A stretch of 64,000 nucleotides of DNA from Bugula neritina (Eukaryota; Animalia; Bryozoa): positions 5,113,751 to 5,177,750 of the forward strand of contig OZ037773.1 in NCBI GenBank assembly GCA_964035545.1. Reading direction: 5' to 3'. Positions within the stretch are counted from its first letter, which is position 1; every line of letters begins with the position of its first letter. Under the pieces are notes generated by a model. It had not been told where the DNA came from, made no database searches, and saw only the letters and a program-made list of their open reading frames with translations. Shown here piece after piece: positions 11,574 through 57,837 of the stretch. Made by a program: the position numbers and the translations under genes.

Positions 11574-14143
11574 TTATCTCTCGCAGACAAAGGAAAAGCG
11601 GGAACTACAGGGAAAGTCAAACCACTTAAATGAAGCAAACATGGCTACACAACTCCCCAAATATTGTTGCGAAGCAATCTCCCAGTTGCCATTGCTAAGT
11701 GGATCACCATTATCCCAGATCCATTCGCCATGCTCCATTTTTGCTCCAATCCAGATTGTGCCACTCCATGCTGTAAAAATCAGTTAAACTTTGCCGAGAA
11801 TGTTTGAAGCAAATATTAAACAGTTAATACACATGTGTTACATTATCTATAAGATAACCAGGGAGATTTAATTATATAGCAAGCGGTAGAGCAATCAAAG
11901 AGCTTTATATACTACATGGCCCAATGCATATCAGCTCATAACATTTAGTGGCATAATGCTGATGATATATCTTGTAATTTAGCATAATTATTGCGATTGA
12001 CATTTATAATAATATTCAGTTCTACAGCTTTAAAAGGTGAAACATTCCACTTTTAGCATATAATAAATATTTTGCGCTATTGAATTTATGTATATTATAT
12101 TTGCGTACATGTGCGAAAGAAATCAATACTGTGAAAGATTACCTAGAAACAATCTTTATTCAAACAAATATAAGCTATAAAACGTTTATTCTAATTTGTT
12201 TGCAACTTGATTATATATTATATATTAATACAGATCTCTATCTGAAGCTCTATTGTAGCATCACATCTAAATCTAGAATATAAAGTAGTTAATAAATTGT
12301 GGCTAGCACATGATGTGACAACTATGAGTCATATATTTTATGCAGTATAAAGTATATTATACTTGATATTATAATAATATACTGTATTTAATAATTTGTG
12401 GGAATAATCACTTGTATATATGTAATATTTTGGGATATTGTTTCTGAAGTATGTATTTTAATGACTTATGACTTAGATTTTAAGTCAAGTCTAAATCTTT
12501 GACTTTGGCTCAAAAAGCAAGAAAGTGTGGTTGTCATTGAATTATAAGCTATAAATGTATGGTATTTTACACCATTCTGTCTAAGAGATGAAAACACTTA
12601 CAAGGTTCTTCAGCTACCAGAGTCTGGTACCATTCAAAGACCTCTTGAGTGTCTAACATCAGAAGACTGGCTCCAATAGATGCACAGACAGCTCGAGCCT
12701 CATTGGCTGTTTTGGCTTCAGAGAAGAACTTGAGACAAGTTTGTTTTACTGGGTTTACCTTCCAACCAGGTTCACATGCTGCACCATTTGGTTCTACAAC
12801 GCAATGTAAACATTTTTAGCTTCACATGCAATGTTTTAAATTTCAGACAGTTAAGTTGTTTTCAAAGGTTATTCTTTTACGCATAATGTATTATTAGTAC
12901 TCCATTAAATGCCCCAAAACTCTTTATGCAAAGTTCTTTTGATAGGTTCCATTTATAAGTATATAAGTATTTTATTAAATGCCATATACAAATCTTTATG
13001 CAAGGAAATTATAAAAAACTTTTCCAAATTTTAAATTGCTGGTGAATTTAGTAACAATCTTAAAAAAACAAGTGATCCATGCATATGTGTTTTTTTTTAT
13101 TAAAATATGTCATCAAGTTTTCTGAATTTCCATTTATTACTTAAACTTTATAATAATTCAAAACCTCTCATTAAATATAGGCTTTTGCTAATGAAAATAT
13201 ATTATAAAAGTTTAACCAAAGTAGCAAATATACCTTAAAATAAAGCAAACACCGAGACTAAAGGCTAATTAGGAGTTATACTTCAAAAGAAGAAAACATG
13301 ATTATTCTTCATACATATTAATTAAGCAGTGCAAAGAGAATTATTGATCAGGCCTATAGTAATGCCAACATTTAAAAGAAAGTTTATGAGAAAATATTGT
13401 GGTGAACTTAAATTGTGTTGATTAAAAACTTTCAAACAAAACTCAATATCATACAGTGTTTAGAATGGAAACAATACTGAAAATCATAACCTTTTCATAT
13501 AATTAGTATACAATGTTTATGAAATCACGCAACTTTTGAAAAAATAGTATAAAGAAACTTCGGTACACCTACCCGTATCATATATTACTGTGTAATTAGA
13601 ATCAAAAGCCAAATTGCTGGCAGAGTAAGAACTGAACTCAGACCAGAAACACTCTTGAGTAGAGGTCTTGTAACCAAACGACTTGCAGGTGGTTTCACTC
13701 AAACAGTTTTGTGCACATCTAGAAACAGAACTGAGTGTGACGGAAGATGAATTTATTAAAACCCGTCCTTTATTATCTTGTTTGTAGTAGAAAGCTTCAA
13801 GAGTACCAGAAACCTGAGAAGATATAAACACAGCTATGAGAGAAATGTAACATAATTACATAAAATAATGCAATTCTAAAAACCTTTGCAACACTTGCAT
13901 TACTGATTGTAATTTTGTGTTCAAAATAGAATAGCTTTATTCCACAGATAAAAATCTTTCTCTAACGAAAAAATAACTGCACAACTCAAATTAAATGAAA
14001 ACATGACATGCACTAAACATTATTAAAACCTGTCTTTTATACGAACTTTCAAACAGACTTTAAAGCATTACACTCTGAATTACCTGAAAGTTATGGAATA
14101 TCAGAGGCCATAGTCCAAAAATGAAAATACTTGAAACTTTCAT
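11574..14143 (-). CDS. PAN/apple + C-type lectin secreted protein, copy 1 (229 aa, intact)
   Basis: Exons 14143-14084 (MKVSSIFIFGLWPLIFHNFQ), 13813-13573 (PAN core CAQNCLSETTCKSFGYKTSTQEC), 12793-12602 (CEPGW..CLKFF..ARAVC) and 11770-11574 (WIG..W.WDNG..C..WFD.PC..FVCER*). Total 690 nt in frame. Confidence 0.9.
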
Positions 14144-14829
14144 AATCTATGAATTTAAAAGCAGCTATCAAGAAATAAAGCAGTTGCACAGTTATAAGCT
14201 ATTTCAACCAACAGCATGAAACCAAAGCTATGACAACTATGTTGTATATGTTCTATGTATATAATATATATTGTATATGTTATAAACCAGCATTCAATAA
14301 GCTTCATGGAATAAAATTGACTGTTAAAAACAGTCATCTTTTATCCAAGTACTATTTTTATAAAAAACGACAATGAAGTTTCCTGAAAATAAATTTAAAT
14401 CTCACGGATGTAACTTGTGTAAACATGAGTTATAACTTGTGTCAATTTTGGTTGCTAAGTGTGTCAACATGGTTTGTTAGTTTATTACTGTACAGTACCT
14501 CTATGTTTAGCAAAGTGAGCCTTACAACTATAATATATATGTACTTAGTTTTTTTATTAAGTAATAAAAGCATACAAAGTTAATTCTATTTTTCTATAAT
14601 CAATAATTGCATTGCAGACTTTATTCTGATTTTTACTGTATATAGCGGACATGAGCTCAATTTAACAAAAAAAGGTTATATTGAACTGTCAAGTAGCTTT
14701 TGTTAGATTCTATTTTCATGTGAGGTTATAGACTGATACCCTAACATGCAGATGACAACCATGACAATTAGGTGGCTGTACGCTGATGCAACCTTGACAG
14801 TATATTCTCACTCAAGTTTATATATATAG

Positions 14830-55015: not shown

Positions 55016-55571
55016 TTTAATCAAACATATCTAATATGTTAAAAATTCATATGAGTAAATCATTTTATTACCATATTAGTTTCATGTTTACACATTTTTT
55101 GTTCAATAGAAAGACGTTCATTTCTTATGGTTATAAGTATTAATCAAAATATACATTTAATTTAAAAACATTATAAATTTCCTAAAAAGCTATTCTTGTT
55201 GAAGTAGTTGTCTGCCCTTTTAGTAAAAACTGTTCACTGTCAAAACTGAATTGCGAACCAATAAAGAGCACATAACATGTATGAAAGAAAAGTTGTAATC
55301 AAAGTCTGTATTTCCTGTATAAACTTGAAACATTCTGATTGCTGTTTTGAAAGCTATTTTATATGAATGAAGACTTAAATTAACAAAAATATTTGCTACA
55401 GTAAGTACATTTACAAGTGTGCCCTATTTTGTTGAAACAAAACACGTTTTTAGTTGTTATACAAGTGCATTATTTTTAGTTGAACTGCTTCTATTGTAAA
55501 TTACACCACCAAGAAATTACACCATGTTTATATATATAGAAAAAGTAGGAAATTTTAAATAAAATCAGCAT

Positions 55572-57837
55572 TCAATATCTCTCACAGACAAAATTCATGT
55601 TAACATAAAAACAGGTGTCGTCATTCCATTTGAAATTGGTATGCATGATGATGCAACTCCCAGAAGTATCTGGTTCACCAGCATTAAATTTAAAATAGTC
55701 CAATTCTTCACCATTGTCCCATTGCCATTCACCATTCTCCATAGTAGCTCCCATCCATATACCATGGTTCCATGCTGTAAAAGCGTATTAGATGAGTGCA
55801 AGAGTTGAGTTGCAATGTACAGGTTCAACTGAGGCTTTTGTTGTTTGTGGGAAATGTGCAATAGCCTTTTGGAGATGCTATTGTTAAGATATAGAGCAAT
55901 AAAATGAAGTATATAGTCTATAGTTGCACAAGTTCTATTTCTGGCAGGAGAAAAGATCTACATACTGCATTTCAAAGTTTAATTACCGTGTGGTTTGCCT
56001 TTTCAAGTTATGCTGAGACATCTGCAACTACTTATATATAATAGCAAGTGAGGATCATATGCAAAAAAACATCATATTATATGCTTATGTATATACCAAC
56101 TGATATTATTTATCTATTGCTGTGCAATTAGCATTGTTATTGCAGTTGCCCTGACACAGCTTGTGCTCTTACAATTAGAAGAGCTAATACATTCTTATAA
56201 ATTCATACTATTCTGTCTAAGAGATGAATACACTTACAAGGTTCCTCAGCTACCAAAGTCTGGTACCATTCATAGACCTCTTGAGTGTCTAACATCAGAA
56301 GATTAGCTCCAATAGATGCACACACACTTCGAGCCATGATGGCTGTTTCAGCTTCAGAGAAGAACTTGAGACAAGTTTGTTTTACTGGGTTTACCTTCCA
56401 ACCAGGCTCACATGCGGCACCACCTGGCTCTACAGTTACAGTTTATTTACAGCTATATTTCCTTAAGACACCGCATAACTTTCCCAGCCTTACATTGGGT
56501 CAATTAATTTTAAAATTAAAGTTAATGCGATTGTTACAATAAAATTGCTTATTTTAATATCTATATAATGTAAAAGCTTTTCTTTGAGTTGCTGTTGCTA
56601 TTAGGAATAAAATTATGAAAGTCGTAGTAATAAAATGCTTTTTAAACTATTACAGCAAATTTTTCACTTATTTTCTAGTTGTCTATAAACTGCAGAGTAT
56701 ATTTTCAAAAATCTTCTATTACTGTTTGAAGATTCTAAAACTTTACTAAGAGATTTATTGCTGGTTTTGATAAGCCTTTTAATCTGTTTGTGAAAGATTT
56801 TAAATATTATTGTAGTTTTGCTTAGATATTTTGTTGCAAGTAAACGATTGCTAAAAATATACTTATTTTTAAGAAAACAACTAAATGCACTTATAAGCAA
56901 AAAATTGTTAGAAAATATAAAGTAATTAGGAGTTATGCAAAACTAATAATCATTTTGAGCTTTCTTTCATTTTGTCAAAGGGATGCCTGCTCATTACCAA
57001 CTTGCCGACTTGACTGAGCATAATATTAAAAAAAAATATTTAAAAGATAGTAAAGAAACTCTATATATATATATATATATATATATATATATATACATAT
57101 ATATATATATATATATACACACACACACACACACACACACAAACACACACACACACACACACACACACACACACACACACACACACACACACACACACAC
57201 ACACACACACACACACACACACACACACACACACACATATATATATATATATATATATATACAACATACCCGTATCATATACTACTGAGTAGTGAGATTC
57301 CAAGGCTAGACTGCTAGAGGAGTAAGAATTGAACTCAGACCAGAAACACTCTTGAGTAGAGTTCTTGTAACCAAACGACTTGCAATTGATTTCACTCAGA
57401 CAGTTTTGTGCACATTTAGAAACGGAACTGAGTCTGACTGAAGATGAGTTGTGTAAAACCCGTCCTTTAGTATCTTGTTGGTAGTAGAAAGCATCAAGAG
57501 TACCAGAAACCTGAGAAGTACATAAACACAGCTATATGAGAGTAAAATAACATAACTATATGAAATAATACAATAGTTAAAACATTGCAAAGCTTGCATT
57601 CATGATTGTTATTTTGTGTTCAAAGTGGAATAGCTTTATTCTGTAAAGAAAAATCTTTCTTCAACAAAAAAAATCAGTGCACAACTTAATTTAAATGAAG
57701 ACATGACGCGTACTAAAAATCATCAAAACATGTCTTTCAAGCAATTTTAAACATTAAACACTTGAAATTTGAATTACCTGAAAGCCATGGAATAACAGAG
57801 TCAATAGTCCAAAAATAAAAATACTTGAAGAGTTCAT
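55572..57837 (-). CDS. PAN/apple + C-type lectin, copy 8 (intact, EPD/WND)
   Basis: Exons 57837-57778 (MNSSSIFIFGLLTLLFHGFQ), 57510-57270, 56429-56238 and 55774-55572, in frame. Confidence 0.9.
57062..57261. repeat. Compound (TA)n-(CA)n-(TA)n microsatellite next to the exon 2 donor of copy 8
   Basis: Direct reading. Confidence 0.97.

Follow-up and report, generated by a model that had tools for sequence, protein, structure and literature searches.

A tandem array of PAN and C-type lectin-like genes in Bugula neritina with seemingly homogenised scaffold exons and a weakly constrained loop exon

The window analyzed here is a stretch of 64,000 nucleotides (nt) from the bryozoan Bugula neritina (contig OZ037773.1, positions 5,113,751 to 5,177,750). 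It is AT-rich (G+C ~31%) and carries many direct repeats spaced 4-10 kb apart, and its stop-to-stop frames on the minus strand contain eight sets of three conserved coding blocks. Gene models for the eight copies were obtained by reading splice sites from the sequence and by aligning the upstream regions. They describe eight tandem minus-strand genes between 11574 (the stop codon of copy 1) and 57837 (the ATG of copy 8), each joining a PAN/apple domain to a C-type lectin-like domain (CTLD). Eight tandem four-exon genes with common intron phases had been proposed in an earlier note on this DNA, and this was confirmed, the phases being 0, 1 and 1. Exon 1 comprises 60 nt from the ATG to a terminal CAG followed by GTAA, encodes a hydrophobic signal-like peptide and ends in phase 0. 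Exon 2 (241/244 nt, phase 1) encodes the PAN/apple domain and exon 3 (192 nt, phase 1) the N-terminal, helix-bearing half of the CTLD, while exon 4 (197-209 nt up to the stop codon) encodes the long-loop half with the positions equivalent to EPN and WND. The spliced products of ~230 amino acids consist of a signal peptide, one PAN/apple domain and one long-form CTLD, with four PAN and six CTLD cysteines. The copies are listed below with their motif pairs at the EPN- and WND-equivalent positions, all eight of which read in the spliced translations as had been claimed.

11574..14143, minus strand: copy 1, intact, SQQ/WFD; exons 14143-14084, 13813-13573 (PAN), 12793-12602 and 11770-11574
16774..19396, minus strand: copy 2, intact, YPS/WHN; exons 19396-19337, 18913-18670, 17954-17763 and 16973-16774
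23733..26117, minus strand: copy 3, intact, divergent subfamily, QPD/WDD; exons 26117-26058, 25565-25322, 24887-24696 and 23941-23733
27692..30003, minus strand: copy 4, EPD/WFD; exon 1 homologue ending at 29950, exons 29667-29423, 28735-28547 and 27894-27692
36890..39517, minus strand: copy 5, intact, RPN/WLD; exons 39517-39458, 39016-38773, 38088-37897 and 37089-36890
44176..49239, minus strand: copy 6, doubtful, QPD/WDD; exons 49239-49180, 48685-48442, 45343-45173 and 44384-44176
50815..53122, minus strand: copy 7, EPD/WFD; exon 1 homologue ending at 53069, exons 52786-52542, 51854-51666 and 51017-50815
55572..57837, minus strand: copy 8, intact, EPD/WND; exons 57837-57778, 57510-57270, 56429-56238 and 55774-55572

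The domain assignments were examined by profile comparison. The exon 4 open reading frame (ORF) of copy 5 matched Pfam PF00059 (Lectin_C) with 34.7 bits (cut-off 22.6) over profile positions 38-107, the C-terminal two thirds. A profile of ten exon 4 peptides matched 88 solved CTLD chains at E≤0.01, and DEC-205, lithostathine, CD23, MBP, CD94 and codakine were among those listed as best. Exon 2 matched PF00024 (PAN_1) with 36.7 bits for copy 5 and 42.8 bits for copy 3 (cut-off 21.4), and the four PAN cysteines are kept in all copies of the alignment. Translations of exon 3 contain C-x-x-G-W followed by a second and a third cysteine, except for copy 6, which is without the GW segment. In exon 4, WIGA, W-x-W-x-N-G and three cysteines make up the CTLD framework, and its frame is open and its framework residues are intact in all eight copies.

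The canonical Ca2+ site 2, consisting of EPN or QPD together with WND and an acidic residue before the strand-3 cysteine, was not found in any of the eight copies. EPN occurs in 0/8 copies, QPD only in copies 3 and 6 (there with WDD) and WND only in copy 8 (there with EPD). The residue two positions before the strand-3 cysteine is an invariant glycine, and the xPx motif is separated from the next cysteine by four residues, compared to eight in the aligned EPN-bearing domain of DEC-205. Bivalve C-type lectins (CTLs) with EPD/WFD, EPD/WND, QPD and WHD/WDD/WID variants have been listed, and several of them bind mannose or galactose (PMC12842671). Since EPD/WFD-type lectins are among these reported sugar binders, the array proteins may also bind sugars. 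The proteins are probably secreted, and their family membership suggests that a ligand, probably a glycan, is bound via the CTLD loops; an immune role is possible.

Not all eight loci are undamaged. Copies 4 and 7 possess an exon 1 homologue with a splice donor, but no ATG follows the preceding stop. Their exon 2 measures 245 nt instead of 241/244 nt, so that reading from the shared acceptor no longer gives the PAN frame. Copy 4 is probably a pseudogene or a gene with a remodelled 5' end, and copy 7 bears the same lesions. In exon 3 of copy 6, a 21-nt in-frame deletion takes out the seven codons for DGWTLNP and with them the first-strand GW, and intron 2 of this copy is interrupted by an element of the long terminal repeat (LTR) type:

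45547..48207, plus strand: LTR-type gag and aspartic protease element of 2.66 kb in intron 2 of copy 6, with zf-CCHC and Asp_protease_2 matches

The element codes only for gag (with a zinc knuckle) and the aspartic protease, in one frame of 470 amino acids (45963-47372, plus strand). It is not present in copy 3, the 96%-identical twin of copy 6, where it appears as a break in the duplication alignment, and was therefore inserted later than the block duplication described below. The proposed eight-copy array thus stands as eight loci on one plan, of which only five (copies 1, 2, 3, 5 and 8) look intact.

Self-comparison of the window revealed a recent segmental duplication, in which copies 3 and 4 correspond to copies 6 and 7; copies 2 and 5 are linked by an older relationship of mosaic type. 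Three groups are separated by exon 4 and the introns, namely {1, 2, 5}, {4, 7, 8} and {3, 6}. Three intervals describe how identity is distributed between and within these groups:

21527..30226: copies 3 and 4 with their spacers, matched by 41989-53346 (copies 6 and 7) as a recent segmental duplication at 92-96% identity
12576..12801, minus strand: exon 3 identity island with copy 1 as the example; its matches to copies 4, 7 and 8 consist of exon 3 plus ≤31 nt of intron
18670..20150, minus strand: promoter-to-PAN-exon module of copy 2, 91-100% identical to copy 5 (~38773-40270)

Exon 3 does not follow this grouping. Among copies 1, 2, 4, 5, 7 and 8 it is 89-97% identical at the nucleotide level with synonymous divergence (dS) of 0.07-0.29, and it stands out as an island of ~225 nt. 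In a global alignment, introns 2 and 3 of copies 1, 2 and 5 are 73.6-73.8% identical to those of copies 4 and 7, versus 71.3±1.5% for shuffled sequences, and BLAST matches between the groups extend ≤31 nt beyond exon 3 into the adjoining intron. In copies 3 and 6, 20-26 of 55-63 residues differ from the other copies, so that the near-invariance claimed for exon 3 applies to six copies and not to these two. Here dS against the rest reaches 1.2-3.7. This saturation rules out constraint on synonymous sites as the cause of the exon 3 likeness, and because these sites can saturate, exon 3 of the six copies is better described as a homogenisation island. Conversion templated by cDNA was set aside as well, as the island extends up to 31 nt into intron 3. 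We infer that gene conversion brought about this homogenisation. Together with exon 3, the 26-31 nt of intron 3 next to the donor (12576-12601 and homologues) are conserved in all copies other than 3 and 6; the first ~26 nt may belong to the conversion tract or act as a splicing signal.

A second pattern was obtained from a fine profile of copy 2 versus copy 5. Promoter, exon 1, intron 1 and exon 2 are 91-100% identical, followed by ~82% in intron 2, 93-96% in exon 3, ~84% in intron 3 and 77% in exon 4, and in the 3' flank identity is gone within ~300 nt. Upstream of the genes, 19650-20050 (copy 2) and ~39770-40170 (copy 5) share 98-100% identity over ~400 nt, while the remainder of the two genes outside the module is ~77-90% identical. 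The tract ends sharply at the exon 2/intron 2 border, and the near-identity of the upstream regions points to a conversion or crossover of very recent date that took in the promoter.

Intron 1 of copies 2 (18914-19336) and 5 (39017-39457) contains ~150 nt of extra sequence that is common to these two copies only and holds a box-B-like motif, GGTTCGAGCCCGG. On account of this motif the insert may be a remnant of a tRNA-derived short interspersed nuclear element (SINE). ARAGORN detected no tRNA in intron 1 of copy 2, and an Rfam scan of 14300-64000 returned no family.

Sequences from outside the window were obtained from metagenomic collections. A word search with the PAN exon retrieved one ORF fragment from a host-associated metagenome of the Joint Genome Institute (JGI), and a word search with the exon 4 ORF retrieved one cluster of three ORF fragments from host-associated JGI metagenomes. 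Full-length annotated relatives were returned by neither search, a blank that their length window and word index make uninformative. A scan of metagenome contigs with the exon 3 peptide gave an unrelated GC-rich bacterial contig (L002) as its sole match. The contigs L001 and L003-L006 (JGI samples 3300003318 and 3300002729) are AT-rich animal host DNA, 80-90% identical to and collinear with the array. L001 (5.4 kb) runs at 80-85% identity along copy 2, the spacer and the copy 1 PAN exon, and in L003-L006 an exon 4 resembling that of copy 1 is present together with its flanking sequence. L003 and L004 recur in both samples and differ by 3.3-3.6%, and are therefore alleles or very recent paralogs. 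All of these contigs were used as ortholog-like sequences, the orthology of L001 and L003 being assumed from collinearity.

Comparison with these contigs separated the histories of exons 3 and 4. In exon 3, copy 2 is 6 nt from copy 1, 9 nt from copy 5 and 15 nt from L001; the window paralogs are 6-9 nt apart and 14-16 nt away from L001. In exon 4 the order is reversed, with copy 2 being 62 nt from copy 1, 44 nt from copy 5 and 28 nt from L001 (Fisher p = 0.001 for the reversal). The exon 4 tree joined copy 2 with L001 (98% support) and copy 1, which sits on a long branch, with L003/L004, and a clade of the window copies 1, 2 and 5 was rejected for exon 4 by the approximately unbiased (AU) test (p = 0.0007). 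Paralogs that are nearer to each other than to the ortholog-like contig in exon 3 only are, as far as these alignments go, the classical signature of partial concerted evolution.

The earlier note had pointed to the contrast between exons 3 and 4 in copies 2 and 5, and this contrast was recovered, with 6/63 amino acids differing in exon 3 and 28/65 in exon 4. The intron beside exon 4 is also very much alike, as the note had stated, and more so than the exon itself (87.6% for intron 3 and 78.0% for exon 4 in per-segment identity). The picture of exon 4 as a variable island within conserved flanks did not hold, since identity drops in the 3' flank as well. Divergence of exon 4 was then set against neighboring non-coding sequence in ortholog-like and recently duplicated pairs:

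Copy 2 and L001: exon 4 14.0%, non-coding sequence 12.8% (introns 2 and 3 and 3' flank pooled), p = 0.66
Copy 1 and L003: exon 4 20.8%, intron 3 14.8%, p = 0.11
L003 and L004: exon 4 3.6%, flanking non-coding sequence 3.3%
Copies 4 and 7: exon 4 4.5%, flanking non-coding sequence 4.5%
Copies 3 and 6: exon 4 1.9%, flanking non-coding sequence 4.8%

Exon 4 and its flanks are thus equally divergent in the ortholog-like and recent pairs, and the claim that exon 4 goes beyond its flanking introns holds only among the older paralogs 1, 2 and 5, in which its divergence is 2-3x that of the whole of intron 3. A mutation process targeted to exon 4 was ruled out, as the recent duplicates have no excess over their introns. 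Among copies 1, 2 and 5 all three codon positions of exon 4 are equally divergent, which fits a different history better than selection at the amino-acid level. This suggests that intron 3 of these copies has been partly homogenised or that their exon 4 is older.

Selection on the exons was analyzed with our own likelihood program (GY94/F3x4), in which branch lengths were taken from model M0 and then scaled with their relative lengths fixed. For exon 4 (11 sequences) the M0 ratio of non-synonymous to synonymous divergence (ω, dN/dS) was 0.61; overall, M0 values were 0.51-0.61. Pairwise values were 0.3-0.7 for most pairs, and the comparisons between groups (dS 0.65-1.8, ω 0.3-0.9) have the appearance of old paralogs. 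Higher values of 1.05-1.33 were obtained for copies 2 and 5, L001 and copy 2, and L001 and copy 5. In the recent pairs counts are low: ω was 1.57 for copies 4 and 7, and copies 3 and 6 had no synonymous change, which leaves the ratio undefined. The comparison of M1a with M2a gave 2ΔlnL = 5.4 (p = 0.067) and that of M7 with M8 gave 5.7 (p = 0.059). When copies 4, 6 and 7 were removed, p was 0.27 for M1a/M2a, 0.12 for M7/M8 and 0.034 for M8a/M8. In the best mixture 34-46% of the sites had ω≈0.1 and the remainder ω≥1, and strong constraint on ~35-45% of the codons recurred under all models. The candidate selected columns, located through an alignment with solved CTLDs, were 4, 23, 33, 36 and 57, and the EPN-equivalent motif begins at column 33. 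Exon 3 had ω = 0.27 and no site-model signal. The PAN exon, used as control, had ω≈0.55, on par with exon 4, and its test was 'significant' (p≈0.001-0.01) through one codon beside an indel whose states are distributed against the tree. This signal looks like a conversion artefact, and as the control turned positive through such a codon, conversion corrupts site tests in this array. The exon 4 site tests are marginal and demonstrably fragile here, and they leave room for a few selected loop sites.

These values bear directly on the proposal that exon 4 is hypervariable and actively diversified, for which the earlier note had expected dN/dS above 1. Such an explanation would hold that diversifying selection acts on the exon 4 loops of a pattern-recognition or allorecognition repertoire, and that scaffold homogenisation and the exclusion of exon 4 from conversion are themselves selected. 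In the closest informative pairs (copies 2 and 5, and L001 with either of them) exon 4 ω is indeed ~1-1.3 and dN, at 0.16-0.37, equals or exceeds intron divergence, and columns 33 and the adjacent 36 were flagged under M8. All eight exon 4 frames have stayed open with their framework, and in molluscs motif variability is regarded in a review as the basis of CTL functional diversity (PMC12842671). The recent pairs add 18 non-synonymous and 2 synonymous changes in exon 4; however, this is no different from a neutral 76:24 (binomial estimate p≈0.11), and two of the three pairs include damaged genes. Against diversification also stand the overall ω of 0.5-0.6, which together with the marginal site tests (M7/M8 included) does not bear out dN/dS above 1, the p values of 0.06-0.07 for M1a/M2a and M7/M8 that rise to 0.12-0.27 without the damaged copies, and the false-looking positive of the PAN control. 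The same holds for the equal divergence of the three codon positions, the match in divergence between exon 4 and its flanks for ortholog-like and recent pairs, and the lesions in 3/8 copies of an array for which no RNA run was found. We therefore regard diversifying selection as a rather unlikely cause of the pattern; as judged from the alignments, exon 4 is weakly constrained rather than demonstrably diversified.

The opposite possibility is that most copies are redundant or dead, that exon 4 drifts, and that the likeness of exons 2-3 is a by-product of conversion between dead and live genes. The start-less and frameshifted copies 4 and 7, the deletion and the retroelement in copy 6 and the ω of ~1 in close pairs would agree with this, as would the sequencing-run search in its yield of no RNA run with the stretch. 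Copies 4 and 7, in which exon 4 is as divergent as the intron (4.5%) and exons 2-3 differ by only 1%, fit conversion acting on pseudogenes. But five copies have complete frames, good splice sites and signal peptides, and exon 3 is constrained at ω 0.27. Within exon 4, 17 columns are invariant among 10 sequences from two genomes, including every structural cysteine, tryptophan and glycine, and a site class of 34-46% of the codons is held at ω≈0.1. A general decay of the array is therefore very unlikely.

Taken together these results are best accounted for, in our judgement with reasonable probability, by an array of duplication and decay in which exons 2-3 undergo conversion on the scale of exons and exon 4 shows ordinary or relaxed divergence. 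A lineage-specific tandem array would have arisen by birth-and-death duplication, including the recent block duplication of copies 3 and 4 to give 6 and 7. Short gene-conversion tracts would hold exon 3 near-identical in six copies, and longer tracts or crossovers would swap the promoter-to-PAN module between copies. Exon 4 would escape this homogenisation and so keep the old divergence of each gene lineage, with its structural residues fixed and its loops evolving at a nearly neutral rate that a few sites may exceed. The appearance of a constant scaffold with a variable exon would then exist mostly because exons 2-3 evolve in concert and exon 4 diverges in an ordinary or relaxed manner. From the proposal of a constant scaffold with a variable module, the observation was retained that the scaffold exons are alike and the loop exon differs; this arises largely because exon 3 and the promoter-to-PAN module have been homogenised, and not through hypermutation of exon 4. 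The array pattern is ordinary for an expanded invertebrate lectin family.

Five points weigh against this duplication, conversion and decay reading. Among copies 1, 2 and 5, exon 4 has diverged 1.3-2x as much as even the nearest 280 nt of intron 3 (p<0.003, codon positions 1+2); to explain this excess, either intron 3 must also have been homogenised to some extent or exon 4 must have been somewhat accelerated. The comparison of M8a with M8 was significant for the 11 exon 4 sequences (p = 0.011, ~16% of the sites at ω≈2.2-2.7). L001 and L003-L006 could be paralogous blocks from outside the window instead of orthologs, and the AU test of concerted evolution on exon 3 alone was not significant (p = 0.08). 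Finally, the sequencing-run search returned one probable source DNA run and no RNA run containing the stretch.

A further possibility combines both forces: tracts in the PAN and first CTLD exons would be tolerated or favored, tracts in exon 4 would be purged and a few loop sites would be diversifying, so that the scaffold is fixed and the loops are free by selection. We consider this unlikely. If it were true, the array would represent a repertoire of lectin-like receptors encoded in the germline of an invertebrate, and the reverse of the merohomogenization known from natural killer (NK) cell receptors, and if selection on the loop exon were true, the locus would be a tractable model of repertoire evolution. 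In invertebrates, tandem expansion of lectin genes is among the main sources of diversity in innate recognition. Under the preferred duplication and conversion reading, the array is a compact example of how exon-sized conversion, block duplication and decay can yield an apparent constant-scaffold/variable-loop pattern. In general, an exon contrast among paralogs can come from a homogenised conserved exon and not from an accelerated variable exon, and site-model tests are easily misled in arrays of this kind.

Apart from the lectin-like genes, the interval between copies 4 and 5 holds an uninterrupted ORF of 301 amino acids that matches NHL repeats weakly (31996-32898, minus strand), in the region of highest local G+C of the array (~35%). 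In the Atlas it lies closest to clusters of NHL 'cell surface protein' families, from bacterial taxa where recorded; the Atlas look-ups returned nothing beyond generic clusters of NHL and PAN proteins. Compound microsatellites of (TA)n/(TG)n/(CA)n, all of them long, are located at 41217-41640, 54400-55020, 57064-57270 and 3392-3767; in copy 8 a (TA)n(TG)n microsatellite starts 3 nt past the exon 2 donor.

The array resembles the expanded CTL families of molluscs and other invertebrates, presumed pattern-recognition proteins, in that these also comprise small secreted CTLD proteins with many paralogs and similarly varying motif positions (PMC12842671). It differs from them in the PAN/apple domain that precedes each CTLD and in the spacing of four residues between xPx and the next cysteine (eight in DEC-205). 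In snake-venom C-type lectin-like proteins and PLA2 genes, 'accelerated evolution' of exons compared to introns is large and general. The array shares with these families that coding sequence for the binding surface evolves at or above the rate of neighboring introns in tandem paralogs, whereas here the excess is absent from ortholog-like and recent pairs and amounts to only 1.3-2x among older paralogs.

The combination of PAN and CTLD is not restricted to this array, as had been stated beforehand. In the LG11L schistosome-resistance region of Biomphalaria glabrata, the adjacent gene models 41 and 42 contain PAN/Apple and C-lectin domains (PMC13712769). These models are alike in domain order, PAN/Apple followed by C-lectin, and in being adjacent genes in a region described as prone to tandem duplication. 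However, there are two models there compared to at least eight copies here, and the annotations disagree there, with one or two repeats per protein. The closest parallel in mechanism is the merohomogenization described for the NK-cell CTLD receptor genes KLRC/NKG2, KLRA/Ly49 and KLRB (Fossum et al., 2011, PMC3210942). In both cases CTLD genes are clustered, conversion after speciation would have affected one part of the gene, and only in that part do paralogs resemble each other more closely than their orthologs. In the NK receptors, which are type II membrane proteins whereas the array proteins are probably secreted, the homogenised part is the ligand-binding domain; in the array the PAN module and the scaffold-forming half of the CTLD are homogenised, and the loop exon escapes.

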